This document shows positions 2,157-30,062 of a stretch of DNA of 64,000 nucleotides, one piece after another (positions within the stretch are counted from its first letter, which is position 1; each line of letters opens with the position of its first letter). A program made the translations under genes and the position numbers. Source of the stretch: Schmidtea nova (taxonomy: Eukaryota); assembly GCA_044892505.1 (NCBI GenBank), contig CM097882.1, positions 312,542,001-312,606,000 of the forward strand. Reading direction: 5' to 3'. The notes beneath the pieces are model-generated. The model saw only the letters and a program-made list of their open reading frames with translations, was not told the DNA's origin and made no database searches.

Positions 2157-2285
2157 AATTTTTCTCAATTCATTATTTGACTTTTATTATATTTGCAACT
2201 CTTTTTTTAATTCATAACGCAATTTTGTTGTTGAATTCTCTACTTTGTACATAAATTTTATTCAAGTGAATTCTTTCAAGGTTCG

Positions 2286-4920
2286 ATGACTCAATCACCT
2301 GCTGCTCAGTCAACTGCTGCTGATGTGATGACTCAGTCTATTGGAAATCAGTCAACTGTGACGAAGAAATATGAATTAGAAAACATTCTCAAGTATCAAA
2401 TTTCCAGTTTGCAATGTTTTCAATCGATTTTGGATTATTTTTCGCAACTAAATGGTGGAAATCTCGCTACTGCCTCAGTTCTTTCTGATGCGAATGCAAG
2501 TCAACGGAGTTCTTTCGATCAAGGATCTAAAATTTCTCAAAACCAATCTGATAATATGCCACTTTCTTATGCTGATATTGAGACTAAATTCACTAAATCA
2601 AAGGATTTACTGATTGTCAAGCGCCTGGATTCATTGGAGTCTCAATTTATGAATATGGCTGAAAAGTTAGATTATTTGGTTTCTTTTTTTTAATGGCTCT
2701 GTTGATGATTTATCAGATTTTCCTAAAGTAAATGAAAATAATTTAAATAATAATCCTTTCAATAAAAATAAAGTTTTTGATATCAAAGATAAATTAATTG
2801 TAAATAATGTAGTTTTAGATAAATCAAATATTTCAGAATTTATTGAAAATAATATTGCTAAAATTCCTAATAGTTTAATTGATGTAAATAATAAAATGTG
2901 TAATTCAAATAATAAATTTCTAAATAACCCTAATAAAGAGAATGTTAAACATTTTAATAATCCCAAAGAAACATCTTCAATTGATTTGACTAACGATAAA
3001 ATTATGCCAAATGAAAACATAGAAATAATTATTAAAAATAATAAAAAATCTGTTAAAATTATAGAACCTAATAAAACAACTAAACAGAAGTATGATAAAT
3101 TTGAATTTAAAAATCTGGTTCGTATTTTAACGAAAAGGGAACGCCAGAAAATCTTGAATGCCTTCCCTGCTTTAATACAACTAATTAAAAAGAAAGAATC
3201 ACAGAGTAAATATTTTGAAATTAATAAATTTCTTTCGAGCAAAGATTTTAATGTGAATCACTTGAATTTAAATAATTTTGATTATTTTTTCTATAGAAAT
3301 TGTAATCTTTGTGTATCTTTAAAATTGAACAACGCTCCTGTCATTTTATCAGCACCAAAACCTGTTGTTTTAAAAACTATTAAATTAATTGACCATAATA
3401 TCGTCAAAATAAATTCTGAAATCCCTGACTTTGTTCGAGCTCCAATGTCAATTCGAAGATTTTTATTCAATCTTTCGCACGATCTTTCAAACACTGTTTC
3501 CATCAAGGATGAGAAACACAGGGGAAATAAAATAAATAACATTCTTACTTCAATGAAACATAAACAACAATTACCAGATTATTTAATAAAATCAAACATT
3601 AAATACGAAAATGGTGAGTTCTTATTATTAGATTTGACTAACGATAAAATCAAATTGAACGACGATAATAACTTGATAAAATCAAATTTTTCTGAACTTA
3701 CTAGAAGTCAGATTAAAAATCTTTACTATTCTTATCCTTCTCTTAAGGAAGTTTGTTTCGTTGAAAATCTTGAAACAAGATCATCATCCGTTAGTAAAAT
3801 TATCGAATCTTTAAAGTTAATTAATGAATTTCCAAAAAATATCATTTTTAAAGAGGGTAAATTTTATCAGTCTGATAAAAGAACAATCTCACCTAGTAGT
3901 TCTCCTGACATAATGTTCAACCTTGGTCTTTTTAATTTGGCTAGTATGAGTAGAAAAGATTGTGAATTAAAATCCATTTTAGAGAAGACTGGTTGTGACT
4001 TTAAAATAGTTGAAATAATATTCTACCTCAACTATTTAGGCTTGACTCAATCTTTAGAATTTTGCAAAAATCAAACTTATTCTGATTATGTGAGGAATTA
4101 CGTCTGTAATTGCTGCTTGATAAACTCACTCTGTAGTATTGCTGATGTTGATTCGCTTTCATCTGAAGATTTTGAGGGTTGGGCGACCGAAATTGTTCAG
4201 AAAATCCCAGTTTCTTCCTATTACTTCAATAGCTGCCAGGAAAAGCTTTTAAAGCTGAAGCAATGGGACATTTCAACTAAAATCAAAAGAATCCATAACG
4301 TTATTTCACCTGAAATAATATCTTATTTAAATAACTTTCTTGACTCTGTAGACGTAAAATTTCCATCTAAGTCTCAACAACATAATATTCTAATTAAATT
4401 AATGAAAGCTATCAATGACATTAAAATTTTTGATGACATACACGGAAATAAAGCAAAAAGACTTGTTTACTTTTTGCTAAGAGATGCCAAGAAATATTTG
4501 AATAAAAATCAACGATTCAGATTATTTGAATCGAGCAATAAATATTGCACTTCAGAGATGGAGAATATAATTTCAGTAATAATTGAGAACCTTACCAAAG
4601 TTACTGACCATGAAGTTACTACTCCTGAAATCACAGTTGAAGAAACGCCAATTGAAATAACTTGTGATCCTGAACCTATCGTCTTGATTAAGGAAATAAA
4701 CTGTTTAAAATGTAACAATATCATCGAAAAATGCATTCTTGTTAGAGATGGAACAAACGTCAACATCTGTGAAAGCTGTCTATTTGACGCAATTACCTTT
4801 GAAAAGCCGATTCCTGAAGCTACTAATTCGGATATCGAAGAAAATATAGAAACAAATTGTAAGAAATCTTGTCCAAGACCTAGAAAAACAGACAAGAAAA
4901 CATCAACCAAAGCAAAATGA
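2286..4920 (+). pseudogene. E1 ORF1, +1 frameshift at T8 (2684-2691); fragments 2286-2693 (135 aa) and 2896-4920 (674 aa)
   Basis: Colinear with the intact 877-aa ORF1 of E3/E5/E6/E7 except for one extra T. Confidence 0.88.
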
Positions 4921-4926
4921 AGATGT

Positions 4927-7900
4927 GTGCCTGCATCAGCTCAATCGTCTGCCATTCCCTCTAATGAGACTGATGCAGAGAGCACAACTAAAAATAATAT
5001 TTCAACTATCGACAATCGTGATCCTGAAGTGTGGTTTTCTGATAATGATATTGATTGGTATCTTGAAAACCACATTGATAATCCAATGCATGGATATATT
5101 AAATGCTTTATAGTAAATATCATCTGTTCTAACATCACAGAAGATATTGTTGAAATTCCACCATCTATTAGCAATGCTGAAATTGTATTTTGTCCACTCA
5201 ACATTAACAATTCGCACTGGATTCTTTTTGTTTATAGTAAGAAAATGTTATCTTCTTACTTTATTGACCCAATCCTTGCAAACAGACAAAAGCCAATCAA
5301 TAAACAAATGGCTCAGAGAATTAACCTAAAACTGAATAGATTTTTTAATCTAAATATATCTGTGTCCCGACATCCACACAAACATCTTGAATATCAAAAT
5401 AACAGCTTTGATTGTGGCCCATTTACGTGTGCTTATGCTGTGATTATCAGTAAAGATTTGAACAGCTTTCCAAATGGGTTCATAGAGAAAATTCGTACCA
5501 GTGTGCATGAAAATCAAAATCGTATGCAAATAACCGAATCCACCTTATTCGCTGGTACTAACTCCAAGATGGACATGACCAAAATAAATATCAAGAAAGC
5601 CCTTGCAAAAAAGAAAGTCATCACCAACACCTCAGATATGACCAAAGTATTGAACACTCAAAAACCGTGTGTGTCATCAATAATTAGTAAATATTACGAA
5701 AGTAATTCTAAAATAACAGTCTTATCTGCCGAACTAACTTTAAACCTAATTGCACAAAATACCTCCTTCATAGCTGATAATGTCACTTTCAAGCAGTTCA
5801 AAGGAATCGATCATGTTATAAGTATCATTCCTAAATTTAACGATTGGTGTCTCTTTGTCTATTCGAATAAACTTGACAGGAGCTACATGTTCGACTTCAA
5901 TTATCGAAACATTGATGAAAGGCTAATTGAAATTGGTGAAAAGATAACTGAATATCTGAATCAATTCACTCTTGTTTCTAAAATAAAATTCACACCTCAT
6001 CATAGAATTTCTCATCCAACATTTCATTCTTACGATGATCAATATTTTGCAAGTTCTTTTATTGTATTTTTTGAGAAACTTGTCTTTGAAAGAATACTGG
6101 ACAATGATAAGGTTTATGACTCATTAAGTGCTCTAAAATATCAGTCTTGTAAAGATCTTTCTCCTAGCCTAAGTTTCATTAATGGTAAAATATCCGACAA
6201 AATTATTGAGGAATATTTTGCTAGCCTAAACTTATCGACCAAATATATTCTTCTAAACACAACAATGTGTACTGCGCTTTCAGATGATTGCACTGAATAC
6301 TTGAAAGACTTTGTAAACATTGAGTGCATGATGAAGGCTACTATAATCTTTGTAATCATTTCTCCTCCAAGAGCCAACGACTTGCTCATGGTTATTGATT
6401 ACGACGCTGATGAGCACTATTTATTAAGCCCAGTCACTAATGACTTGTTCGTTATGACTGAAGGATTCTGCTATAAATTACTAATTAAAATTAATGAGAT
6501 TAGAGAGAGCACAGGACGTTCCTTGAAATCGCGTAATTGTCGACATGACGTTAAAGGTTCTGGCTTATTTAGTAGGTTATTAATCTGTGCCTTTATTAAA
6601 TATTATGCATTTGACCGATCTCTAGAAAATATCAATCTTCATGAAATTGGCAAAATTATCTACTCACTTGTGCCATTAGTTGATAAAAATGATAATGCTG
6701 AGGAAGAAAGACGACTAAAATCAAAAGCTGTAAACTCTTTAAAACTAAATTTAAAACAGCGAATAGAAAAAGCCAATAATCTTATAATTTCACTTGAACA
6801 CGCCAGTATTGATGAAATCATAAGTGGCATTCTTTCAAATATTCCTCGTCTTAAAGATTTGAACACCGATCACATTCGTACACCATATTTAGGTACTAAA
6901 ATAGAAAAAGCTAGAAAATTCAAAAATTCCACTGAATTTCTGTCAAACATGAAAAAGACTGTGTATAGGATTTTGGGTAATAACACAGAATCAATTGCAC
7001 CTCCTTTTCAGGAAATTATTGACACTTTCAGTCATCCTGATACATTACCTAGAAATTGGGAAAACATCTTAAAATTCACTAAGAGTTCTAAATTTAGTCT
7101 TGAATTAAATCCAATGACACCTAAAGAAATCCTTTCAAGTCTTTGCAAAGCTGACAACACTTCTCCAGGTCTTGATAATGTTTGTTATAAAGATCTTTTG
7201 TTATTAGACCCTGAATGTAAATTGCTAGCTTTTCTGTACAATAAAATCCTAAAATTAGACATTATTCCTACAAGTTGGAAATCATTTAAAACCATACTAA
7301 TCCCCAAACCAGATAAAAATGGCCAATATCATAAAATATATTCTTGGCGACCAATTGCCTTATTATCTGTCATTTACAAAGTCTTCGCTTCAGTTTTGGC
7401 AAATCGTCTAAGCTTATGGATAAGAAATAATTCCATGTTACACATTGGCCAAAAGGGTGGTTCGGAGTACGAAGGATGTATTGAACACAACTCTATTCTT
7501 TCTGCTATCGTCGAACATTCAAAATACAGCAAGTCTTCACCTTTAACGATAGCTTGGCTAGACATCAAAGATGCCTTCGGAAGTGTTCCACATGACTACA
7601 TGTGGACACTGTTAAAACACATAAATGTTAGTGATAGGTTTGTAGGAATTTTAAAACTGCTCTATACTGATACAAGCTCGTTTTATTGTTGCAATAAAAT
7701 GCAGACACCGGATATTCCAATAAAGAAAGGAGTTAAACAAGGTTGTCCGATCTCAATGATATTGTTTGCAATAGCTATTAACCCAGTACTTGAGTCTATT
7801 AATCTATCAAACGTTAATACTTTTACGATTGGAACATCTCCGGTACAGGTGTTGGCTTATGCGGATGATATCGCACTTATCGCGACAAATACCTCTGATC

Positions 7901-9537
7901 TGCAAATACTCATAAACGTTGCTGTAAACACTGCTAAAACAATTGGATTTGAATATCGTCCAGAAAAGTGCGCTTATATGCAATACCCTAAAATAGAAAC
8001 TGTAAGCGAGATTTCTGTCAACAACGTTCTTATAAAAAAGATTGCAACAAATGAATTTTACCAATACTTGGGAGTACCAATAGGTGACAATAATGATCAA
8101 AGTCCCTATGAAATTCTAAGCAAAGTAATTGAAGACACAAAGAAAATAGCAAATTCTGATCTTTACGGCTGGCAAAAACTTAAAGCGTATAAGGTCTTTC
8201 TGCATTCTCGCTTGATTTTTCCATTTAGAACTAGGGAAATCAAAACAAGTTCTTTAGCTGATTCGAGTAAAAATTCAAAATTAAATGTAAATAATACGAG
8301 TATTTTGAGGAGTCATCTTAGAAAAATATTGCACTTGCCACACTACTCTGAGATTAGCTATTTTTATAATTCTACTGAAAACGGCGGTGCAGGCTGCATA
8401 GACTTACTTGACGAGTATCATACACAGACAATCGTGTACTTTTTCCGTTTGTTAACATCAACGTGCGAATATTCGAAAAAGATAAATACAGACTCGCTTT
8501 TATTTGTCACAAGTCCGAGACTCGGAATCAAAAATCCAGTTCTTAAACAAAGTTTAGAATGGATAAATGGAAAAGACAGCAAGAAAAACAACAGTGGTTG
8601 CAAAACTCGATTTTATCGGTTGCGATCATCCATTGCTTACTTTTCTAAAGTTCACAACATTAAATTGTTATTTGAAACAGTGAAAGGGAATCCTTCTATC
8701 CGGATAACCACTACACTTAAGGGAACACGTATATTATTACCAACATTAAGAAAAGCCTTGTCAATGATTTTACATTCAGCTCTCCAGGATTCGTATCTCG
8801 AGAAATGGGAGAATAGCAATCATAATAATCTGCTTGTATCTGCGATTAAACTCTGTCCACTGGTCAACAGGCTTATTTTCCGCAGTGATTTGACAGAATT
8901 TGAATGGAGATTCGTCCATCGAGCAAGAACGAATACATTATCAATATTTGCGAAGCCATATAAAACTGGCGAAAATCGTCTTTGTCGTAGATGTAAGCTT
9001 GAAGACGAGACTTTATCACACGTTCTTCAAACTTGTAAAATGAACAAATCTTGGGCAACTAGTCGACATAACGCTTGCTTAGAAAAAATAAAAAGCGAGT
9101 TGAAAGATCCAAACTTGTTAGTTGTTGCGGATCATAAATGTTCCCTAGTACCGACATCAACTGAACGCGTTGATTTAATAATAACCAATAATGATAAAAA
9201 GACCATATTATTGGTAGACATGAAATGCCCAATCGATTCGGTGCCCAACTTTGATTTGGCTGATAAAAAAAACATAGAAAAGTATGATAAACTAAAATCA
9301 GAAATTAAAATAGCCAAACCCGATTATAAAGTTGAGTTGTTTACCTGCATCATAGGCTCATTAGGATCCATTGAAATTAAAACACCTGATCTTTTAGTAA
9401 AAATGGGAGTAAAAGAAAATAAAGTAAAACGTCTGATGAAAGAGTGTGCAATTAGCAATATTGCGCACTCGGCCAAAATTTGGTACTTTCATACCAATGG
9501 CTTTCTTCCAGATAATATAAGACAAACTTGTAAATAA
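4927..9537 (+). CDS. E1 ORF2 polyprotein: Ulp1-like protease(s), RT, CCHC, RLE. Frame is open from 4921; the track start is GTG; first ATG is 5086
   Basis: WFSDNDI/HW/IDP/QNNSFDCG; SPGLD, WRPIALL, LDIKDAFGSVPH, GVKQGCPIS, YADD, YLGV; CRRC-x8-H-x4-C, RHN, RVD..DMK..KY. Confidence 0.95.
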   Translation: MPASAQSSAIPSNETDAESTTKNNISTIDNRDPEVWFSDNDIDWYLENHIDNPMHGYIKCFIVNIICSNITEDIVEIPPSISNAEIVFCPLNINNSHWILFVYSKKMLSSYFIDPILANRQKPINKQMAQRINLKLNRFFNLNISVSRHPHKHLEYQNNSFDCGPFTCAYAVIISKDLNSFPNGFIEKIRTSVHENQNRMQITESTLFAGTNSKMDMTKINIKKALAKKKVITNTSDMTKVLNTQKPCVSSIISKYYESNSKITVLSAELTLNLIAQNTSFIADNVTFKQFKGIDHVISIIPKFNDWCLFVYSNKLDRSYMFDFNYRNIDERLIEIGEKITEYLNQFTLVSKIKFTPHHRISHPTFHSYDDQYFASSFIVFFEKLVFERILDNDKVYDSLSALKYQSCKDLSPSLSFINGKISDKIIEEYFASLNLSTKYILLNTTMCTALSDDCTEYLKDFVNIECMMKATIIFVIISPPRANDLLMVIDYDADEHYLLSPVTNDLFVMTEGFCYKLLIKINEIRESTGRSLKSRNCRHDVKGSGLFSRLLICAFIKYYAFDRSLENINLHEIGKIIYSLVPLVDKNDNAEEERRLKSKAVNSLKLNLKQRIEKANNLIISLEHASIDEIISGILSNIPRLKDLNTDHIRTPYLGTKIEKARKFKNSTEFLSNMKKTVYRILGNNTESIAPPFQEIIDTFSHPDTLPRNWENILKFTKSSKFSLELNPMTPKEILSSLCKADNTSPGLDNVCYKDLLLLDPECKLLAFLYNKILKLDIIPTSWKSFKTILIPKPDKNGQYHKIYSWRPIALLSVIYKVFASVLANRLSLWIRNNSMLHIGQKGGSEYEGCIEHNSILSAIVEHSKYSKSSPLTIAWLDIKDAFGSVPHDYMWTLLKHINVSDRFVGILKLLYTDTSSFYCCNKMQTPDIPIKKGVKQGCPISMILFAIAINPVLESINLSNVNTFTIGTSPVQVLAYADDIALIATNTSDLQILINVAVNTAKTIGFEYRPEKCAYMQYPKIETVSEISVNNVLIKKIATNEFYQYLGVPIGDNNDQSPYEILSKVIEDTKKIANSDLYGWQKLKAYKVFLHSRLIFPFRTREIKTSSLADSSKNSKLNVNNTSILRSHLRKILHLPHYSEISYFYNSTENGGAGCIDLLDEYHTQTIVYFFRLLTSTCEYSKKINTDSLLFVTSPRLGIKNPVLKQSLEWINGKDSKKNNSGCKTRFYRLRSSIAYFSKVHNIKLLFETVKGNPSIRITTTLKGTRILLPTLRKALSMILHSALQDSYLEKWENSNHNNLLVSAIKLCPLVNRLIFRSDLTEFEWRFVHRARTNTLSIFAKPYKTGENRLCRRCKLEDETLSHVLQTCKMNKSWATSRHNACLEKIKSELKDPNLLVVADHKCSLVPTSTERVDLIITNNDKKTILLVDMKCPIDSVPNFDLADKKNIEKYDKLKSEIKIAKPDYKVELFTCIIGSLGSIEIKTPDLLVKMGVKENKVKRLMKECAISNIAHSAKIWYFHTNGFLPDNIRQTCK
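5023..5451 (+). other. Ulp1/SENP (C48)-like cysteine protease domain in ORF2 (shown for E1; present in all copies)
   Basis: His97 (HW, 5215), Asp114 (5266), Gln157 and Cys163 (QxNxxDCG, 5413) in C48 order. Confidence 0.85.
7114..8091 (+). other. Non-LTR reverse transcriptase domain (shown for E1)
   Basis: RT motifs SPGLD to YLGV; YADD at 7858-7869. Confidence 0.96.
8983..9290 (+). other. CCHC zinc knuckle and restriction-like (PD-D/ExK) endonuclease (shown for E1)
   Basis: CRRC 8983, H 9019, C 9034; RHN 9064; RVD 9166; DMK 9217; KY 9280. Confidence 0.88.
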
Positions 9538-9542
9538 ATAAT

Positions 9543-9556
9543 TATATATATATATA
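9543..9556. repeat. (TA)7 tract at the start of the 3' UTR ((TA)8 in E6)
   Basis: Directly visible after the ORF2 stop in every complete copy. Confidence 0.85.
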
Positions 9557-9891
9557 AATATTTGCTTTTTAAACTCTGTAAATAAAATTTAAGGTAAATA
9601 TTTTGTAAAGTAATTTTTGTATTAAATATCCAATCTTTTTAATCTGATAAATTGTCTTTGAGAGTTATTAAATTGGGAGACCAAGTATTCTGCGACGTAT
9701 GTCACTTATTCTAGAATTATCAACTTCAAAAGAATACAGTCGCAAAGCTGGATGACGAAATCCAAAGAACCAGAAACTTCCATTCAGATTGAACAATTAT
9801 ATTTTGACTGTGATTGTTTAGGGACTAATCCATGTTGATTAGATAATCTGTAAAAAAATATGTCAAACTTGTTATATTTAATAAATGTTTA

Positions 9892-9946
9892 TTATCACGT
9901 CTGCCTAACACGCAGAAGGTCCCCGGTTCGATCCCGGGTCGAACCA
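9892..9946 (+). pseudogene. 5'-truncated tRNA-Val(AAC), nt 19-73
   Basis: Abuts E1 3' end. Confidence 0.93.
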
Positions 9947-10126
9947 AATTTTTCTCAATTCATTATTTGACTTTTATTATATTTGCAACTCTTTTTTTAA
10001 TTCATAACGCAATTTTGTTGTTGAATTCTCTACTTTGTACATAAATTTTATTCAAGTGAATTCAGTACATTTTGTCAAGGTAATTCGAAAATCAAACATG
10101 CACAACAATTGTTAGTTGAAACTGTC

Positions 10127-10199
10127 GGTTCGATGGTGTAGCGGTTATCACGTCTGCCTAACACGCAGAAGGTCCCCGGTTCGATCCCGGGTCGAACCA
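10127..10199 (+). tRNA. trnV(AAC): tRNA-Val(AAC)
   Basis: Identical to 566-638. Confidence 0.97.
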
Positions 10200-10379
10200 A
10201 ATTTTTCTCAATTCATTATTTGACTTTTATTATATTTGCAACTCTTTTTTTAATTCATAACGCAATTTTGTTGTTGAATTCTCTACTTTGTACATAAATT
10301 TTATTCAAGTGAATTCAGTACATTTTGTCAAGGTAATTCGAAAATCAAACATGCACAACAATTGTTAGTTGAAACTGTC

Positions 10380-10452
10380 GGTTCGATGGTGTAGCGGTTA
10401 TCACGTCTGCCTAACACGCAGAAGGTCCCCGGTTCGATCCCGGGTCGAACCA
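10380..10452 (+). tRNA. trnV(AAC): tRNA-Val(AAC)
   Basis: Identical to 566-638. Confidence 0.97.
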
Positions 10453-10632
10453 AATTTTTCTCAATTCATTATTTGACTTTTATTATATTTGCAACTCTTT
10501 TTTTAATTCATAACGCAATTTTGTTGTTGAATTCTCTACTTTGTACATAAATTTTATTCAAGTGAATTCAGTACATTTTGTCAAGGTAATTCGAAAATCA
10601 AACATGCACAACAATTGTTAGTTGAAACTGTC

Positions 10633-10705
10633 GGTTCGATGGTGTAGCGGTTATCACGTCTGCCTAACACGCAGAAGGTCCCCGGTTCGATCCCGGGTCG
10701 AACCA
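10633..10705 (+). tRNA. trnV(AAC): tRNA-Val(AAC)
   Basis: Identical to 566-638. Confidence 0.97.
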
Positions 10706-10885
10706 AATTTTTCTCAATTCATTATTTGACTTTTATTATATTTGCAACTCTTTTTTTAATTCATAACGCAATTTTGTTGTTGAATTCTCTACTTTGTACA
10801 TAAATTTTATTCAAGTGAATTCAGTACATTTTGTCAAGGTAATTCGAAAATCAAACATGCACAACAATTGTTAGTTGAAACTGTC

Positions 10886-10958
10886 GGTTCGATGGTGTAG
10901 CGGTTATCACGTCTGCCTAACACGCAGAAGGTCCCCGGTTCGATCCCGGGTCGAACCA
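10886..10958 (+). tRNA. trnV(AAC): tRNA-Val(AAC)
   Basis: Identical to 566-638. Confidence 0.97.
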
Positions 10959-11087
10959 AATTTTTCTCAATTCATTATTTGACTTTTATTATATTTGCAA
11001 CTCTTTTTTTAATTCATAACGCAATTTTGTTGTTGAATTCTCTACTTTGTACATAAATTTTATTCAAGTGAATTCTTTCAAGGTTCG

Positions 11088-13722
11088 ATGACTCAATCAC
11101 CTGCTGCTCAGTCAACTGCTGCTGATGTGATGACTCAGTCTATTGGAAATCAGTCAACTGTGACGAAGAAATATGAATTAGAAAACATTCTCAAGTATCA
11201 AATTTCCAGTTTGCAATGTTTTCAATCGATTTTGGATTATTTTTCGCAACTAAATGGTGGAAATCTCGCTACTGCCTCAGTTCTTTCTGATGCGAATGCA
11301 AGTCAACGGAGTTCTTTCGATCAAGGATCTAAAATTTCTCAAAACCAATCTGATAATATGCCACTTTCTTATGCTGATATTGAGACTAAATTCACTAAAT
11401 CAAAGGATTTACTGATTGTCAAGCGCCTGGATTCATTGGAGTCTCAATTTATGAATATGGCTGAAAAGTTAGATTATTTGGTTTCTTTTTTTTAATGGCT
11501 CTGTTGATGATTTATCAGATTTTCCTAAAGTAAATGAAAATAATTTAAATAATAATCCTTTCAATAAAAATAAAGTTTTTGATATCAAAGATAAATTAAT
11601 TGTAAATAATGTAGTTTTAGATAAATCAAATATTTCAGAATTTATTGAAAATAATATTGCTAAAATTCCTAATAGTTTAATTGATGTAAATAATAAAATG
11701 TGTAATTCAAATAATAAATTTCTAAATAACCCTAATAAAGAGAATGTTAAACATTTTAATAATCCCAAAGAAACATCTTCAATTGATTTGACTAACGATA
11801 AAATTATGCCAAATGAAAACATAGAAATAATTATTAAAAATAATAAAAAATCTGTTAAAATTATAGAACCTAATAAAACAACTAAACAGAAGTATGATAA
11901 ATTTGAATTTAAAAATCTGGTTCGTATTTTAACGAAAAGGGAACGCCAGAAAATCTTGAATGCCTTCCCTGCTTTAATACAACTAATTAAAAAGAAAGAA
12001 TCACAGAGTAAATATTTTGAAATTAATAAATTTCTTTCGAGCAAAGATTTTAATGTGAATCACTTGAATTTAAATAATTTTGATTATTTTTTCTATAGAA
12101 ATTGTAATCTTTGTGTATCTTTAAAATTGAACAACGCTCCTGTCATTTTATCAGCACCAAAACCTGTTGTTTTAAAAACTATTAAATTAATTGACCATAA
12201 TATCGTCAAAATAAATTCTGAAATCCCTGACTTTGTTCGAGCTCCAATGTCAATTCGAAGATTTTTATTCAATCTTTCGCACGATCTTTCAAACACTGTT
12301 TCCATCAAGGATGAGAAACACAGGGGAAATAAAATAAATAACATTCTTACTTCAATGAAACATAAACAACAATTACCAGATTATTTAATAAAATCAAACA
12401 TTAAATACGAAAATGGTGAGTTCTTATTATTAGATTTGACTAACGATAAAATCAAATTGAACGACGATAATAACTTGATAAAATCAAATTTTTCTGAACT
12501 TACTAGAAGTCAGATTAAAAATCTTTACTATTCTTATCCTTCTCTTAAGGAAGTTTGTTTCGTTGAAAATCTTGAAACAAGATCATCATCCGTTAGTAAA
12601 ATTATCGAATCTTTAAAGTTAATTAATGAATTTCCAAAAAATATCATTTTTAAAGAGGGTAAATTTTATCAGTCTGATAAAAGAACAATCTCACCTAGTA
12701 GTTCTCCTGACATAATGTTCAACCTTGGTCTTTTTAATTTGGCTAGTATGAGTAGAAAAGATTGTGAATTAAAATCCATTTTAGAGAAGACTGGTTGTGA
12801 CTTTAAAATAGTTGAAATAATATTCTACCTCAACTATTTAGGCTTGACTCAATCTTTAGAATTTTGCAAAAATCAAACTTATTCTGATTATGTGAGGAAT
12901 TACGTCTGTAATTGCTGCTTGATAAACTCACTCTGTAGTATTGCTGATGTTGATTCGCTTTCATCTGAAGATTTTGAGGGTTGGGCGACCGAAATTGTTC
13001 AGAAAATCCCAGTTTCTTCCTATTACTTCAATAGCTGCCAGGAAAAGCTTTTAAAGCTGAAGCAATGGGACATTTCAACTAAAATCAAAAGAATCCATAA
13101 CGTTATTTCACCTGAAATAATATCTTATTTAAATAACTTTCTTGACTCTGTAGACGTAAAATTTCCATCTAAGTCTCAACAACATAATATTCTAATTAAA
13201 TTAATGAAAGCTATCAATGACATTAAAATTTTTGATGACATACACGGAAATAAAGCAAAAAGACTTGTTTACTTTTTGCTAAGAGATGCCAAGAAATATT
13301 TGAATAAAAATCAACGATTCAGATTATTTGAATCGAGCAATAAATATTGCACTTCAGAGATGGAGAATATAATTTCAGTAATAATTGAGAACCTTACCAA
13401 AGTTACTGACCATGAAGTTACTACTCCTGAAATCACAGTTGAAGAAACGCCAATTGAAATAACTTGTGATCCTGAACCTATCGTCTTGATTAAGGAAATA
13501 AACTGTTTAAAATGTAACAATATCATCGAAAAATGCATTCTTGTTAGAGATGGAACAAACGTCAACATCTGTGAAAGCTGTCTATTTGACGCAATTACCT
13601 TTGAAAAGCCGATTCCTGAAGCTACTAATTCGGATATCGAAGAAAATATAGAAACAAATTGTAAGAAATCTTGTCCAAGACCTAGAAAAACAGACAAGAA
13701 AACATCAACCAAAGCAAAATGA
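11088..13722 (+). pseudogene. E2 ORF1, +1 frameshift at T8 (11486-11493)
   Basis: Fragments 11088-11495 and 11698-13722. Confidence 0.88.
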
Positions 13723-13728
13723 AGATGT

Positions 13729-16700
13729 GTGCCTGCATCAGCTCAATCGTCTGCCATTCCCTCTAATGAGACTGATGCAGAGAGCACAACTAAAAATAAT
13801 ATTTCAACTATCGACAATCGTGATCCTGAAGTGTGGTTTTCTGATAATGATATTGATTGGTATCTTGAAAACCACATTGATAATCCAATGCATGGATATA
13901 TTAAATGCTTTATAGTAAATATCATCTGTTCTAACATCACAGAAGATATTGTTGAAATTCCACCATCTATTAGCAATGCTGAAATTGTATTTTGTCCACT
14001 CAACATTAACAATTCGCACTGGATTCTTTTTGTTTATAGTAAGAAAATGTTATCTTCTTACTTTATTGACCCAATCCTTGCAAACAGACAAAAGCCAATC
14101 AATAAACAAATGGCTCAGAGAATTAACCTAAAACTGAATAGATTTTTTAATCTAAATATATCTGTGTCCCGACATCCACACAAACATCTTGAATATCAAA
14201 ATAACAGCTTTGATTGTGGCCCATTTACGTGTGCTTATGCTGTGATTATCAGTAAAGATTTGAACAGCTTTCCAAATGGGTTCATAGAGAAAATTCGTAC
14301 CAGTGTGCATGAAAATCAAAATCGTATGCAAATAACCGAATCCACCTTATTCGCTGGTACTAACTCCAAGATGGACATGACCAAAATAAATATCAAGAAA
14401 GCCCTTGCAAAAAAGAAAGTCATCACCAACACCTCAGATATGACCAAAGTATTGAACACTCAAAAACCGTGTGTGTCATCAATAATTAGTAAATATTACG
14501 AAAGTAATTCTAAAATAACAGTCTTATCTGCCGAACTAACTTTAAACCTAATTGCACAAAATACCTCCTTCATAGCTGATAATGTCACTTTCAAGCAGTT
14601 CAAAGGAATCGATCATGTTATAAGTATCATTCCTAAATTTAACGATTGGTGTCTCTTTGTCTATTCGAATAAACTTGACAGGAGCTACATGTTCGACTTC
14701 AATTATCGAAACATTGATGAAAGGCTAATTGAAATTGGTGAAAAGATAACTGAATATCTGAATCAATTCACTCTTGTTTCTAAAATAAAATTCACACCTC
14801 ATCATAGAATTTCTCATCCAACATTTCATTCTTACGATGATCAATATTTTGCAAGTTCTTTTATTGTATTTTTTGAGAAACTTGTCTTTGAAAGAATACT
14901 GGACAATGATAAGGTTTATGACTCATTAAGTGCTCTAAAATATCAGTCTTGTAAAGATCTTTCTCCTAGCTTAAGTTTCATTAATGGTAAAATATCCGAC
15001 AAAATTATTGAGGAATATTTTGCTAGCCTAAACTTATCGACCAAATATATTCTTCTAAACACAACAATGTGTACTGCGCTTTCAGATGATTGCACTGAAT
15101 ACTTGAAAGACTTTGTAAACATTGAGTGCATGATGAAGGCTACTATAATCTTTGTAATCATTTCTCCTCCAAGAGCCAACGACTTGCTCATGGTTATTGA
15201 TTACGACGCTGATGAGCACTATTTATTAAGCCCAGTCACTAATGACTTGTTCGTTATGACTGAAGGATTCTGCTATAAATTACTAATTAAAATTAATGAG
15301 ATTAGAGAGAGCACAGGTCGTTCCTTGAAATCGCGTAATTGTCGACATGACGTTAAAGGTTCTGGCTTATTTAGTAGGTTATTAATCTGTGCCTTTATTA
15401 AATATTATGCATTTGACCGATCTCTAGAAAATATCAATCTTCATGAAATTGGCAAAATTATCTACTCACTTGTGCCATTAGTTGATAAAAATGATAATGC
15501 TGAGGAAGAAAGACGACTAAAATCAAAAGCTGTAAACTCTTTAAAACTAAATTTAAAACAGCGAATAGAAAAAGCCAATAATCTTATAATTTCACTTGAA
15601 CACGCCAGTATTGATGAAATCATAAGTGGCATTCTTTCAAATATTCCTCGTCTTAAAGATTTGAACACCGATCACATTCGTACACCATATTTAGGTACTA
15701 AAGTAGAAAAAGCTAGAAAATTCAAAAATTCCACTGAATTTCTGTCAAACATGAAAAAGACTGTGTATAGGATTTTGGGTAACAACACAGAATCAATTGC
15801 ACCTCCTTTTCAGGAAATTATTGACACTTTCAGTCATCCTGATACATTACCTAGAAATTGGGAAAACATCTTTAAATTCACTAAGAGTTCTAAATTTAGT
15901 CTTGAATTAAATCCAATGACACCTAAAGAAATCCTTTCAAGTCTTTGCAAAGCTGACAACACTTCTCCAGGTCTTGATAATGTTTGTTATAAAGATCTTT
16001 TGCTATTAGACCCTGAATGTAAATTGCTAGCTTTTCTGTACAATAAAATCCTAAAATTAGACATTATTCCTACAAGTTGGAAATCATTTAAAACCATACT
16101 AATCCCTAAACCAGATAAAAATGGCCAATATCATAAAATATATTCTTGGCGACCAATTGCCTTATTATCTGTCATTTACAAAGTCTTCGCTTCAGTTTTG
16201 GCAAATCGTCTAAGCTTATGGATAAGAAATAATTCCATGTTACACATTGGCCAAAAGGGTGGTTCGGAGTACGAAGGATGTATTGAACACAACTCTATTC
16301 TTTCTGCTATCGTCGAACATTCAAAATACAGCAAGTCTTCACCTTTAACAATAGCTTGGCTAGACATCAAAGATGCCTTCGGAAGTGTTCCACATGACTA
16401 CATGTGGACACTGTTAAAACACATAAATGTTAGTGATAGGTTTGTAGGAATTTTAAAACTGCTCTATACTGATACAAGCTCGTTTTATTGTTGCAATAAA
16501 ATGCAGACACCGGATATTCCAATAAAGAAAGGAGTTAAACAAGGTTGTCCGATCTCAATGATATTGTTTGCAATAGCTATTAACCCAGTACTTGAGTCTA
16601 TTAATCTATCAAACGTTAATCCTTTTACGATTGGAACATCTCCGGTACAGGTGTTGGCTTATGCGGATGATATCGCACTTATCGCGACAAATACCTCTGA

Positions 16701-19384: not shown

Positions 19385-22018
19385 ATGACTCAATCACCTG
19401 CTGCTCAGTCAACTGCTGCTGATGTAATGACTCAGTCTATTGCAAATCAGTCAACTGTGACGAAGCAATATGAATTAGAAAACATTCTCAAATATCAAAT
19501 TTCCAGTTTGCAATATTTTCAATCGATTTTGGATTATTTTTCTCAACTAAATGGTGGAAATCTCGCTACTGCCTCAGTTCTATCTGATGCGAATGCAAGT
19601 CAACGGAGTTCTTTCGATCAAGGATCTAAAATTTCTCCAAACCAATCTGATAATATGCCACTTTCTTATGCTGATATTGAGACTAAATTCACTAAATCAA
19701 AGGATTTACTTATTGTCAAGCGCCTGGATTCATTGGAGTCTCAATTTATGAATATGGCTGAAAAGTTAGATTATTTGGTTTCTTTGTTTAATGGCTCTGT
19801 TGATGATTTATCAGATTTTCCTAAAGTAAATGAAAATAATTTAAATAATAATCCTTTCAATAAAAATAAAGTTTTTGATATCAAAGATAAATTAATTGTA
19901 AATAATGTAGTTTTAGATAAATCAAATATTTCAGAATTTATTGAAAATAATATTGCTAAAATTCCTAATAGTTTAATTGATGTAAATAATAAAATGTGTA
20001 ATTCAAATAATAAATTTCTAAATAACCCTAATAAAGAGAATGTTAAACATTTTAATAATCCCAAAGATACATCTTCAATTGATTTGACTAACGATAAAAT
20101 TATGCCAAATGAAAACATAGAAATAATTATTAAAAATAATAAAAAATCTGTTAAAATTATAGAACTTTATAAAACAACTAAACAGAAGTATGATAAATTT
20201 GAATTTAAAAGTCTGGTTCGTATTTTAACGAAAAGGGAACGCCAGAAAATCTTGAATGCCTTCCCTGCTTTAATACAACTAATTAAAAAGAAAGAATCAC
20301 AGAGTAAATATTTTGAAATTAATAAATTTCTTTCGAGCAAAGATTTTAATGTGAATCACTTGAATTTAATTAATTTTGATTATTTTTTCTATAGAAATTG
20401 TAATCTTTGTGTATCTTTAAAATTGAACAACGCTCCTGTCATTTCATCAGCACCAAAACCTGTTGTTTTAAAAACTATTAAATTAATTGACCATAATATC
20501 GTCAAAATAAATTCTGAAATCCCTGACTTTGTTCGAGCTCCAATGTCAATTCGAAGATTTTTATTCAATCTTTCGCACGATCTTTCAAACACTGTTTCCA
20601 TCAAGGATGAGAAACACAGGGGAAATAAAATAAATAACATTCTTACTTCAATGAAACATAAACAACAATTACCAGATTATTTAATAAAATCAAACATTAA
20701 ATACGAAAATGGTGAGTTCTTATTATTAGATTTGACTAACGATAAAATCAAATTGAACGACGATAATAACTTGATAAAATCAAATTTTTCTGAACTTACT
20801 AGAAGTCAGATTAAAAATCTTTACCATTCTTATCCTTCTCTTAAGGAAGTTTGTTTCGTTGAAAATCTTGAAACAAGATCATCATCCGTTAGTAAAATTA
20901 TCGAATCTTTAAAGTTAATTAATGAATTTCCAAAAAATATCATTTTTAAAGAGGGTAAATTTTATCAGTCTGATAAAAGAACAATCTCACCTAGTAGTTC
21001 TCCTGACATAATGTTCAACCTTGGTCTTTTTAATTTAGCTAGTATGAGTAGAAAAGATTGTGAATTAAAATCCATTTTAGAGAAGACTGGTTGTGACTTT
21101 AAAATAGTTGAAATAATATTCTACCTCAACTATTTAGGCTTGACTCAATCTTTAGAATTTTGCAAAAATCAAACTTATTCTGATTATGTGAGGAATTACG
21201 TCTGCAATTGCTGCTTGATAAACTCACTCTGTAGTATTGCTGATGTTGATTCGCTTTCATCTGAAGATTTTGAGGGTTGGGCGACCGAAATTGTTCAGAA
21301 AATCCCAGTTTCTTCCTATTACTTCAATAGCTGCCAGGAAAAGCTTTTAAAGCTGAAGCAATGGGACATTTCAACTAAAATCAAAAGAATCCATAACGTT
21401 ATTTCACCTGAAATAATATCTTATTTAAATAACTTTCTTGACTCTGTAGACGTAAAATTTCCATCTAAGTCTCAACAACATAATATTCTAATTAAATTAA
21501 TGAAAGCTATCAATGACATTAAAATTTTTGATGACATACACGGAAATAAAGCAAAAAGACTTGTTTACTTTTTGCTAAGAGATGCCAAGAAATATTTGAA
21601 TAAAAATCAACGATTCAGATTATTTGAATCGAGCAATAAATATTGCACTTTAGAGATGGAGAATATAATTTCAGTAATAATTGAGAACCTTACCAAAGTT
21701 ACTGACCATGAAGTTACTACTCCTGAAATCACAGTTGAAGAAACGCCAATTGAAATAACTTGTGATCCTGAACCTATCGTCTTGATTAAGGAAATAAACT
21801 GTTTAAAATGCAACAATATCATCGAAAAATGCATTCTTGTTAGAGATGGAACAAACGTCAACATCTGTGAAAGCTGTCTATTTGACGCAATTACCTTTGA
21901 AAAGCCGATTCCTGAAGCTACTAATTCGGATATCGAAGAAAATATAGAAACAAATTGTAAGAAATCTTGTCCAAGACCTAGAAAAACAGACAAGAAAACA
22001 TCAACCAAAGCAAAATGA
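19385..22018 (+). CDS. E3 ORF1, 877 aa, function unknown (coiled coil, Asn-rich region, C-terminal C4 zinc finger, basic tail)
   Basis: Long open frame conserved across copies; CLKC-x18-CESC. Confidence 0.88.
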   Translation: MTQSPAAQSTAADVMTQSIANQSTVTKQYELENILKYQISSLQYFQSILDYFSQLNGGNLATASVLSDANASQRSSFDQGSKISPNQSDNMPLSYADIETKFTKSKDLLIVKRLDSLESQFMNMAEKLDYLVSLFNGSVDDLSDFPKVNENNLNNNPFNKNKVFDIKDKLIVNNVVLDKSNISEFIENNIAKIPNSLIDVNNKMCNSNNKFLNNPNKENVKHFNNPKDTSSIDLTNDKIMPNENIEIIIKNNKKSVKIIELYKTTKQKYDKFEFKSLVRILTKRERQKILNAFPALIQLIKKKESQSKYFEINKFLSSKDFNVNHLNLINFDYFFYRNCNLCVSLKLNNAPVISSAPKPVVLKTIKLIDHNIVKINSEIPDFVRAPMSIRRFLFNLSHDLSNTVSIKDEKHRGNKINNILTSMKHKQQLPDYLIKSNIKYENGEFLLLDLTNDKIKLNDDNNLIKSNFSELTRSQIKNLYHSYPSLKEVCFVENLETRSSSVSKIIESLKLINEFPKNIIFKEGKFYQSDKRTISPSSSPDIMFNLGLFNLASMSRKDCELKSILEKTGCDFKIVEIIFYLNYLGLTQSLEFCKNQTYSDYVRNYVCNCCLINSLCSIADVDSLSSEDFEGWATEIVQKIPVSSYYFNSCQEKLLKLKQWDISTKIKRIHNVISPEIISYLNNFLDSVDVKFPSKSQQHNILIKLMKAINDIKIFDDIHGNKAKRLVYFLLRDAKKYLNKNQRFRLFESSNKYCTLEMENIISVIIENLTKVTDHEVTTPEITVEETPIEITCDPEPIVLIKEINCLKCNNIIEKCILVRDGTNVNICESCLFDAITFEKPIPEATNSDIEENIETNCKKSCPRPRKTDKKTSTKAK

Positions 22019-27427: not shown

Positions 27428-30062
27428 ATGACTCAATCACCTGCTGCTCAGTCAACTGCTGCTGATGTGATGACTCAGTCTATTGGAAATCAGTCAACTG
27501 TGACGAAGAAATATGAATTAGAAAACATTCTCAAGTATCAAATTTCCAGTTTGCAATGTTTTCAATCGATTTTGGATTATTTTTCGCAACTAAATGGTGG
27601 AAATCTCGCTACTGCCTCAGTTCTTTCTGATGCGAATGCAAGTCAACGGAGTTCTTTCGATCAAGGATCTAAAATTTCTCAAAACCAATCTGATAATATG
27701 CCACTTTCTTATGCTGATATTGAGACTAAATTCACTAAATCAAAGGATTTACTGATTGTCAAGCGCCTGGATTCATTGGAGTCTCAATTTATGAATATGG
27801 CTGAAAAGTTAGATTATTTGGTTTCTTTTTTTTAATGGCTCTGTTGATGATTTATCAGATTTTCCTAAAGTAAATGAAAATAATTTAAATAATAATCCTT
27901 TCAATAAAAATAAAGTTTTTGATATCAAATATAAATTAATTGTAAATAATGTAGTTTTAGATAAATCAAATATTTCAGAATTTATTGAAAATAATATTGC
28001 TAAAATTCCTAATAGTTTAATTGATGTAAATAATAAAATGTGTAATTCAAATAATAAATTTCTAAATAACCCTAATAAAGAGAATGTTAAACATTTTAAT
28101 AATCCCAAAGAAACATCTTCAATTGATTTGACTAACGATAAAATTATGCCAAATGAAAACATAGAAATAATTATTAAAAATAATAAAAAATCTGTTAAAA
28201 TTATAGAACCTAATAAAACAACTAAACAGAAGTATGATAAATTTGAATTTAAAAATCTGGTTCGTATTTTAACGAAAAGGGAACGCCAGAAAATCTTGAA
28301 TGCCTTCCCTGCTTTAATACAACTAATTAAAAAGAAAGAATCACAGAGTAAATATTTTGAAATTAATAAATTTCTTTCGAGCAAAGATTTTAATGTGAAT
28401 CACTTGAATTTAAATAATTTTGATTATTTTTTCTATAGAAATTGTAATCTTTGTGTATCTTTAAAATTGAACAACGCTCCTGTCATTTTATCAGCACCAA
28501 AACCTGTTGTTTTAAAAACTATTAAATTAATTGACCATAATATCGTCAAAATAAATTCTGAAATCCCTGACTTTGTTCGAGCTCCAATGTCAATTCGAAG
28601 ATTTTTATTCAATCTTTCGCACGATCTTTCAAACACTGTTTCCATCAAGGATGAGAAACACAGGGGAAATAAAATAAATAACATTCTTACTTCAATGAAA
28701 CATAAACAACAATTACCAGATTATTTAATAAAATCAAACATTAAATACGAAAATGGTGAGTTCTTATTATTAGATTTGACTAACGATAAAATCAAATTGA
28801 ACGACGATAATAACTTGATAAAATCAAATTTTTCTGAACTTACTAGAAGTCAGATTAAAAATCTTTACTATTCTTATCCTTCTCTTAAGGAAGTTTGTTT
28901 CGTTGAAAATCTTGAAACAAGATCATCATCCGTTAGTAAAATTATCGAATCTTTAAAGTTAATTAATGAATTTCCAAAAAATATCATTTTTAAAGAGGGT
29001 AAATTTTATCAGTCTGATAAAAGAACAATCTCACCTAGTAGTTCTCCTGACATAATGTTCAACCTTGGTCTTTTTAATTTGGCTAGTATGAGTAGAAAAG
29101 ATTGTGAATTAAAATCCATTTTAGAGAAGACTGGTTGTGACTTTAAAATAGTTGAAATAATATTCTACCTCAACTATTTAGGCTTGACTCAATCTTTAGA
29201 ATTTTGCAAAAATCAAACTTATTCTGATTATGTGAGGAATTACGTCTGTAATTGCTGCTTGATAAACTCACTCTGTAGTATTGCTGATATTGATTCGCTT
29301 TCATCTGAAGATTTTGAGGGTTGGGCGACCGAAATTGTTCAGAAAATCCCAGTTTCTTCCTATTACTTCAATAGCTGCCAGGAAAAGCTTTTAAAGCTGA
29401 AGCAATGGGACATTTCAACTAAAATCAAAAGAATCCATAACGTTATTTCACCTGAAATAATATCTTATTTAAATAACTTTCTTGACTCTGTAGACGTAAA
29501 ATTTCCATCTAAGTCTCAACAACATAATATTCTAATTAAATTAATGAAAGCTATCAATGACATTAAAATTTTTGATGACATACACGGAAATAAAGCAAAA
29601 AGACTTGTTTACTTTTTGCTAAGAGATGCCAAGAAATATTTGAATAAAAATCAACGATTCAGATTATTTGAATCGAGCAATAAATATTGCACTTCAGAGA
29701 TGGAGAATATAATTTCAGTAATAATTGAGAACCTTACCAAAGTTACTGACCATGAAGTTACTACTCCTGAAATCACAGTTGAAGAAACGCCAATTGAAAT
29801 AACTTGTGATCCTGAACCTATCGTCTTGATTAAGGAAATAAACTGTTTAAAATGTAACAATATCATCGAAAAATGCATTCTTGTTAGAGATGGAACAAAC
29901 GTCAACATCTGTGAAAGCTGTCTATTTGACGCAATTACCTTTGAAAAGCCGATTCCTGAAGCTACTAATTCGGATACCGAAGAAAATATGGAAACAAATA
30001 GTAAGAAATCTTGTCCAAGACCTAGAAAAACAGACAAGAAAACATCAACCAAAGCGAAATGA
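27428..30062 (+). pseudogene. E4 ORF1, +1 frameshift at T8 (27826-27833)
   Basis: Fragments 27428-27835 and 28038-30062. Confidence 0.88.

Follow-up and report, generated by a model that had tools for sequence, protein, structure and literature searches.

Retrotransposons of the NeSL type, which are without long terminal repeats (non-LTR), have been known since 2000 to encode Ulp1-like proteases. In NeSL and Utopia-1_TSP one Ulp1-like domain only has been described, and NeSL relatives that target tRNA genes, namely NeSL-1_TV, LIN15_SM and LIN25_SM, are already known (PMC4640811). The open-access literature searched contained no experimental account of the role of these proteases, no tandem or dead C48 copies and no readthrough expression in NeSL-type elements, and no non-LTR retrotransposon with programmed readthrough of a stop codon. 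Here we analyse a window of 64 kb (the whole stretch under study, positions 312,542,001 to 312,606,000 of contig CM097882.1 of Schmidtea nova, assembly GCA_044892505.1), which is free of N and is built as an array in which a 253-bp unit with one tRNA-Val(AAC) gene is repeated, interrupted by seven near-identical copies of a ~7.6-kb non-LTR retrotransposon. Each copy encodes a long first open reading frame (ORF1) and a second one of 1536 amino acids (aa), ORF2, which is intact in all seven copies.

A sequence-only reading of the window had assigned to a NeSL-type element a row of three Ulp1-like folds, the first catalytic and the other two apparently pseudo-proteases, and had been aware of no described triplication. 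The arrangement is supported by the homology between the domains and by a structural model of the third; the novelty is in keeping with the literature searched, which reports the single domain of NeSL and Utopia-1_TSP. In the following the domains are called R1, R2 and R3, and the unrelated name of the R2 retrotransposons is always given as R2 elements or R2 proteins.

R1, R2 and R3 are paralogous C48 domains

The N-terminus of ORF2 is made up of three paralogous domains that are homologous to the C48 (Ulp1/SENP) proteases. R1 is of the active type, while R2 and R3 are pseudo-proteases, since both are devoid of the catalytic His and Cys and R3 lacks the Asp as well. The region 5023-6612, in which the earlier reading had located them, corresponds to aa 33-562 of ORF2, and all motifs quoted from it are found in the sequence. 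R1 is recognized by Pfam as Peptidase_C48 (PF02902) over aa 81-179 with an E value of 6e-7 and 29.9 bits, above the cut-off of 20.7 bits, and a three-sequence profile of the domain matches SENP8, Ulp1, SENP1 and SENP2, with SENP8 as the best relative of solved structure. The His/Asp/Cys triad, formed by H97, D114 and C163, is intact as proposed. Together with W36, W98 and Q157 these residues are invariant in the window and in P0001 and P0002, the three closest members of the family, and R1 is thus predicted to retain a complete catalytic apparatus with triad, oxyanion Gln and both tunnel Trp residues.

The relationship of R2 to R1 is visible in the single sequence. BLASTP aligns 80 aa, beginning at the strand of the His and ending at the helix of the Cys, at 29% identity (E 3e-5), and the Smith-Waterman score has a z value of 7.2, with none of 2000 shuffles reaching an equal score. 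As the alignment contains three gap positions, the claim that it runs without gaps was wrong, while the homology, the replacement of His by Asp and the loss of the Cys site stand. The position of the Cys, D371 in the window, is occupied by Pro in P0001 and P0002. From the triad only the Asp, D323, remains; one tunnel Trp is lost and the other, W307, is kept, and the domain has a near neutral isoelectric point (pI). Searches of PDB sequences with R2 profiles gave no match, neither with the three-sequence nor with a deeper profile.

For R3, single-sequence comparison is not significant, neither with R1 (BLASTP E 7.3; z 1.7, with 125 of 2000 shuffles as good) nor with R2, and hhalign with three-sequence profiles gave only weak E values of 0.004 to 0.08. 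The motif matches by which R3 had originally been recognized therefore lie within chance on one sequence, and an internal-repeat signal in the single sequence exists for R1-R2 but not for R1-R3. Profiles built without shared sequences relate all three domains to each other, with hhalign E values of 1e-5 for R1-R2, 5e-6 for R1-R3 (154 columns) and 2e-6 for R2-R3, and the register originally assigned to R3 turned out to be right. The domains are further linked by a bridging pair of sequences (P0018 aa 226-412 and P0014 aa 95-280), which match R1, R2 and R3 with E values of 3e-14, 4e-12 and 6e-12, respectively. In the second domain of P0018 (aa 241-411) the His is replaced by Lys, the Asp is kept, and D-S-G-P stands in place of the D-C-G-P of C48; the R1, R2 and R3 profiles match it with 37, 30 and 40 bits.

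An AlphaFold2 model of aa 400-590, calculated from a 16-sequence alignment of R3 domains that included no active C48 domain, reached a predicted local distance difference test (pLDDT) of 85.7 and a predicted template modelling score (pTM) of 0.83. In a Foldseek search against the PDB, the best match of this model was yeast Ulp1 (1euv_A, E 1e-6, template modelling score 0.71), and the first 43 matches were all of the C48 type, comprising Ulp1, SENP1/2/3/5/7/8, XopD and NopD. R3 is accordingly modelled with the three-dimensional fold of C48 proteases. With profiles, the link to PDB sequences is faint: the three-sequence profile found none and the deeper one only Ulp1, at a marginal E value of 0.021. 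The C48 fold is hence backed by structure comparison for R3 and by sequence only for R2. In the R3 model, S549 is the initial residue of the nucleophile-bearing helix, and N484 and S501 take the positions of His and Asp; the tunnel Trp positions are K421 and D485. The triad is lost as had been claimed, yet the site is not blank, with Ser at the position of the nucleophile. This Ser is found in most members and belongs to the best-conserved motif of R3, the former active site G-S-G-L-F-S-x-L-L-I/L-C, which suggests that the cleft may still be in use. The domain is mildly acidic, with a pI of about 5-6. A Ser-His-Asn enzyme was considered and rejected; a His is present at the matching position in about half of the R3 domains of the family, but it is missing in the window (N484) and in P0002, for which reason R3 is treated as inactive.

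Conservation and distribution of the dead domains

A word-index search with aa 1-620 retrieved two relatives of full length that have the same three parts and identities of 46% and 43%, and a further word search added four more members with three domains. With HMMER, a profile of R2 and R3 together matched 18 proteins among 1.84 billion representative proteins, and no nematode NeSL protein was among them. Ten of these 18 carriers were checked with Pfam and proved to be retroelement ORF2 proteins or fragments of such, none of them a stand-alone cellular C48 protease. In total, no more than about two dozen related elements showed the three-domain arrangement. Pfam does not detect R2 or R3 in ORF2 or in any member of the alignments, apart from one bridging member with an E value of 0.024 for C48. 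As Pfam overlooks R2 and R3, similar pseudo-protease domains may escape the routine annotation of transposons.

In an unrooted tree of the domains, the R1, R2 and R3 groups are supported with 100/98, 96/95 and 100/99, respectively, and the second domain of P0018 is placed near the centre. Each of the three domains forms a lineage of its own, which is old and has been conserved separately in this small retroelement family. Members with two domains exist in both versions, P0010 and P0009 with R1 and an R3-type domain and P0014 with R1 and an R2-type domain; since the tree is unrooted and these members carry either type, it does not give the order in which R2 and R3 were duplicated or lost. Among family members, R2 and R3 are 40-47% identical, R1 43-56%. 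Across the seven copies of the window, six codons vary within aa 1-584, all of them synonymously, compared with 28 synonymous and 12 non-synonymous changes in the whole of ORF2. The dead domains R2 and R3 appear to be kept by selection, given their R1-like conservation, their well supported lineages and the exclusively synonymous changes. The family offers an example from nature of pseudo-enzymes that evolved through tandem duplication within mobile DNA.

The ORF1-ORF2 junction, the element and its target

ORF1 and ORF2 lie in one frame and are split by a single UGA in all nine elements compared (the window and eight relatives), and the same UGA-hairpin site is present in the six other copies of the window. 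The earliest AUG of ORF2 is codon 54 and is located within R1. A conserved stem of 13-15 bp begins six nucleotides 3' of the UGA. RNAalifold, applied to five loci, predicts 15 pairs, three of which show compensatory changes, and locus L003 adds more; the hairpin of the window has a minimum free energy of -25.4 kcal/mol with a z value of -4.0. The arms of the stem encode the peptides V-P-A-S and T-D-A-E-S-T, which accounts for the conservation of both. The codon following the UGA in the nine elements is CGG in four, AGA in two, and CUA, CGU and CAC in one each; UGA-CGG and UGA-CUA are, as we presume, contexts that favour readthrough in plant viruses. A use of TGA as sense codon was rejected, as neither the 877-aa nor the 1536-aa reading frame contains a TGA in frame. 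From the lack of a usable AUG, the one-frame UGA and the conserved hairpin, we infer that ORF2 is produced as a readthrough fusion with ORF1, with the live protease just behind the junction. Programmed readthrough of a stop codon is therefore a candidate mode of expression for this non-LTR element. The positions of all features are compiled in the table.

Table. Positions of the features described, in window coordinates.
Feature	Position	Strand	Residues and remarks
Non-LTR retrotransposon, copy 1, in 253-bp tRNA-Val(AAC) array	2274..9891	+	Basis: seven identical junctions
ORF1	2286..4920	+	877 aa in four copies (e.g. 19385-22018)
In-frame UGA between ORF1 and ORF2	4918-4920	+	Candidate programmed readthrough signal, with hairpin
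Hairpin between ORF1 and ORF2	4921-4989	+	Candidate programmed readthrough signal, with UGA
ORF2	4927-9537	+	1536 aa; three tandem C48 (Ulp1/SENP) domains at N-terminus
R1, predicted catalytic C48 (Ulp1/SENP) domain	5023..5526	+	aa 33-200
R1 catalytic sites	5215-5217, 5266-5268, 5395-5397, 5413-5415		H97, D114, Q157, C163
Gly-Gly(-Gly) linker position, candidate self-cleavage site	5545..5559	+	aa 207-211; consensus L-x-G-G-G/A
R2, C48-like pseudo-protease	5632..6141	+	aa 236-405
R2 substitutions	5842-5844, 6037-6039		D306 at His, D371 at Cys; W307 and D323 retained
R3, C48-fold pseudo-protease	6142..6666	+	aa 406-580
R3 substitutions	6376-6378 (N484), 6571-6573 (S549)		N484 at His, S501 at Asp, S549 at Cys
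Reverse transcriptase domain	7300..8079	+	aa 792-1051; Pfam RVT_1 E 2e-29
CCHC zinc knuckle and restriction-like endonuclease motif	8947..9534	+	C1353, C1356, H1365, C1370; D1416...D1431-x-K1433; invariant columns; weak zf-RVT match
Target tRNA-Val(AAC) array	9892..11075	+	3' junction of each copy in tRNA D-loop

Behind the C48 domains, ORF2 continues with a reverse transcriptase (RT), a CCHC knuckle and a restriction-like endonuclease (RLE) of the PD-(D/E)xK type, and no apurinic/apyrimidinic endonuclease is found; the endonuclease was assigned by reading its motif against known R2-type endonucleases only. The nearest solved structures of the RT-to-endonuclease part are those of R2 proteins (E 7e-54), to which it aligns from residue ~309 onward. 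The RVT_1 match, the CCHC knuckle, the D...D-x-K motif and the proximity to R2 proteins assign the element, by its predicted protein, to the RLE-type non-LTR retrotransposons of the R2/NeSL group. No zinc finger or Myb domain was found in ORF2 upstream of the RT. About 70 residues past R3, and likewise upstream of the RT, a P-Y-L-G motif (aa 653-656, 6883-6894) with basic residues behind it is invariant in all members in which the region is seen, including the distant members P0006, P0008, P0010 and P0015.

The ORF2 starts of the six further copies in the window are located at 13729, 22025, 30069, 38364, 46913 and 56223. In copies 1, 2 and 4, ORF1 is divided into 135 and 674 aa by a premature stop, which they share (2691-2693, 11493-11495 and the equivalent site in copy 4, whose ORF1 lies at 28038), and ORF2 is unbroken in these copies. 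Substitutions among the seven copies fall into groups; together with the shared ORF1 stop, this pattern suggests that duplication at the level of the array was mixed with separate insertions. A Pfam scan of the 877-aa ORF1 gave no family match. Close to its C-terminus there is a CxxC...CxxC motif, which also occurs in L003 and L006.

All seven copies are inserted at the identical point, in the D-loop of tRNA-Val, 3' of nucleotide 18. Insertion into the repeated target is site-specific, as seen from these copies and from the distant relative in L007, which occupies the same site. tRNA-Val is thereby newly added to the small-RNA genes known as targets. At the 5' junction (2260-2300), which is the same in all copies, the array unit ends 63 bp short of the next tRNA and continues with tttcaa plus GGTTCGATG, the initial nine nucleotides of the tRNA; the 3' junction of copy 1 lies within 9880-9900, in a sequence common to all copies. 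The ATG of ORF1 is contained in the GGTTCGATG nonamer, so that the element has nearly no 5' untranslated region of its own, and in L006, too, the ORF1 ATG stands right at the junction. Such a start may mean that the element is co-transcribed with its target.

In L007 (7100-8323), the distant member P0021 joins a tRNA-Val gene of a sequence identical to that of the window, and the downstream tRNA-Val genes have, as read by eye, the anticodon regions AAC, CAC and TAC. The identity of the tRNA-Val gene implies that the host is the same as, or close to, that of the window, and that no fewer than two diverged lineages of the retroelement family occur in it. Next to the 3' end of L008 (~7420-7480) stands the apparent 3' portion of a further tRNA-like gene, with the junction once more behind G-C-G-G. 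L006 (1-140, 7560-8223) is located in a ~250-bp satellite, and ~70 bp of the satellite unit flank the element on both sides. A search for tRNA or other RNA targets beside L001-L006 found none. With L008 and L006 differing from the window, targets vary within the family.

Proposed processing and comparison with known systems

C48 and related proteases of clan CE cleave after Gly-Gly, and SENP8 cleaves after LRGG. In 13 of 17 members (P0001-P0023), GG or GGG is present 44-52 residues past the catalytic Cys, in a linker that is otherwise not conserved and in proteins of which glycine makes up just 2-3%. A mechanism can be proposed on this basis. Ribosomes would read through the UGA and translate ORF2 as part of a fusion with ORF1, in the manner of gag-pro-pol. 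R1, placed right behind the readthrough site, would act chiefly in cis as a processing protease and cleave at the Gly-Gly motif within the R1-R2 linker. Cleavage would leave R2-R3 as the N-terminus of the RT-endonuclease, at the place where R2 elements hold their zinc-finger and Myb domains. There, R2 and R3, without catalysis, may bind a protein or peptide, or be a scaffold for it, rather than for nucleic acid, with R3 employing its former active-site cleft, in which Ser has replaced Cys. Polyprotein processing, which the earlier reading had named as one option, is supported by the one-frame UGA with its hairpin and by the GG that follows R1 in most relatives. For the whole chain, in which R1 processes the readthrough fusion and R2 and R3 are retained as non-catalytic modules on the RT-endonuclease, we consider the chances of being right or wrong about evenly balanced.

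Several observations weigh against this proposal. In all seven copies of the window, which are otherwise intact, L-F-A-G-T stands in the linker in place of L-x-G-G-G, and three other members are also devoid of the linker GG. Either changes at this site are tolerated or the element can do without processing there, and the Gly motif could be just a flexible hinge. Furthermore, no conserved GG is found between ORF1 and R1, so that ORF1 would remain fused to R1. On the structural side, the sole model that spans R2, an AlphaFold2 model of aa 1-620 from three sequences, is of low confidence (pLDDT 41.6); one order of helices and strands recurs in it three times, and it was used for this secondary-structure order only, not for a fold search.

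R1 could instead be directed at the host, as a deSUMOylase, deneddylase or deubiquitinase that acts against SUMO-dependent silencing, with R2 and R3 as binders of SUMO or other ubiquitin-like proteins, or as decoys, bringing the enzyme or the ribonucleoprotein to modified chromatin. SUMO-binding or decoy modules beside an active deSUMOylase were among the functions that the earlier reading had suggested. R1 does hold all residues of an isopeptidase, both tunnel Trp included, and the Ser at the nucleophile position of most R3 domains equals the Cys-to-Ser change made in SENPs in the laboratory for SUMO-bound crystals such as 2g4d, a structure that is itself among the fold matches of R3. The motif at the former active site is, moreover, the part of R3 with the strongest conservation. 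However, the Trp residues that clamp Gly-Gly are both absent from R3, and one of them from R2, and the Asp of W-x-x-D, which we take to be a SUMO contact in Ulp1, is not conserved in R3. As the position of R1 after the readthrough site and the GG behind it are better explained by self-processing, we regard a host-directed enzyme as rather unlikely. The lost Trp residues likewise make the threading of a Gly-Gly tail doubtful. In a far-reaching version of the processing proposal, a gag-pro-pol plan would have evolved independently, with UGA readthrough stimulated by the hairpin, the C48 protease would free itself at L-x-G-G, and its duplicates R2 and R3 would be natural substrate traps, R3 with Ser for the catalytic Cys. 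They would hold a tail that ends in Gly-Gly, from the element's own cleavage product or from a ubiquitin-like modifier attached to Pol III components, and would in this way keep the RT-endonuclease at its partner or at tRNA genes. In this full form the proposal is improbable.

R2 and R3 might also be concerned with the target, replacing zinc-finger and Myb domains, and bind the DNA of the tRNA gene, or a Pol III factor on it, to direct the cut in the D-loop region. The three C48 domains do occupy the position upstream of the RT at which no zinc finger or Myb domain is found, and insertion is at one precise tRNA-Val site in the seven copies and in the distant relative. That very relative, in L007, shares the site despite highly diverged N-terminal domains, whereas L006, with the same three domains, lies in a satellite. 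The acidic character of R3 and the near neutral pI of R2 weakly disfavour nucleic-acid binding in general, and the CxxC...CxxC motif of ORF1 could serve for recognition instead; a role in targeting thus seems unlikely. Finally, R2 and R3 may be leftovers of duplication that are decaying and have become mere spacers, as their catalytic residues are gone and as the existence of two-domain relatives shows that one copy is dispensable in some lineages. But both are conserved as separate lineages across members that share only 20-45% identity, R3 is predicted to fold with high confidence, and not a single amino-acid change in aa 1-584 stands against the six synonymous ones among the seven copies, which makes decay very improbable.

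The processing proposal amounts to a testable model of four parts: a readthrough fusion, a protease at the junction, Gly-Gly behind it, and two dead copies on the RT-endonuclease. A single Ulp1-like domain being already known, what appears to be new in the predicted protein is the tandem triplication of C48 with two dead copies. Its interest is moderate for the fields of transposons and pseudo-enzymes, and would be higher if the model of processing and substrate trapping held true.

Among the described systems, the nematode RLE-type elements NeSL-1 and Utopia-1_TSP resemble the element in architecture, with an N-terminal Ulp1-like protease, and in their site-specific insertion in multicopy small-RNA genes. 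They have been described with one protease domain, whereas three C48 domains, two of them dead, are present here. The Utopia families generally consist of a single protein with N-terminal zinc fingers (PMC4640811), while our element has none of these and carries a separate long ORF1 connected by the in-frame UGA. R2 proteins (9nl2, 9nl3, 9dou, 8gh6) share the C-terminus with CCHC knuckle and RLE, and R2 elements insert site-specifically in a tandem RNA gene as well. They have a single ORF with an N-terminal zinc-finger/Myb region and no protease; here R1-R2-R3 take that position. With the cellular Ulp1/SENP/NEDP1 proteases (MEROPS C48, clan CE), R1 has in common the fold, the His-Asp-Cys triad, the oxyanion Gln and the Trp tunnel, and R3 the fold; those proteases are single-domain enzymes, in contrast to the tandem in ORF2 with its triad-less R2 and R3.

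In its proposed way of working the element also resembles gammaretroviruses. In murine leukaemia virus (MuLV), for example, a structural ORF is followed by a stop in the same frame, an RNA structure downstream of it, a protease and an RT. The order of gag-pro-pol is the same as here, but the aspartic protease of MuLV is unrelated to the C48 cysteine protease of our element, which belongs to the non-LTR type, has a restriction-like endonuclease and carries two dead protease copies behind the live one. The resemblance is one of working principle and not of family membership. For the dead copies, Rpn11-Rpn8, CSN5-CSN6, BRCC36-Abraxas and the pseudo-USP domain of PAN2 offer a parallel, in which a dead fold of a ubiquitin-family protease acts as scaffold or activator beside an enzyme or nuclease. 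These pairs have other folds (JAMM, USP), are separate polypeptides save for PAN2, and none is part of a mobile element, whereas R1, R2 and R3 are tandem domains within the ORF2 of a retrotransposon.

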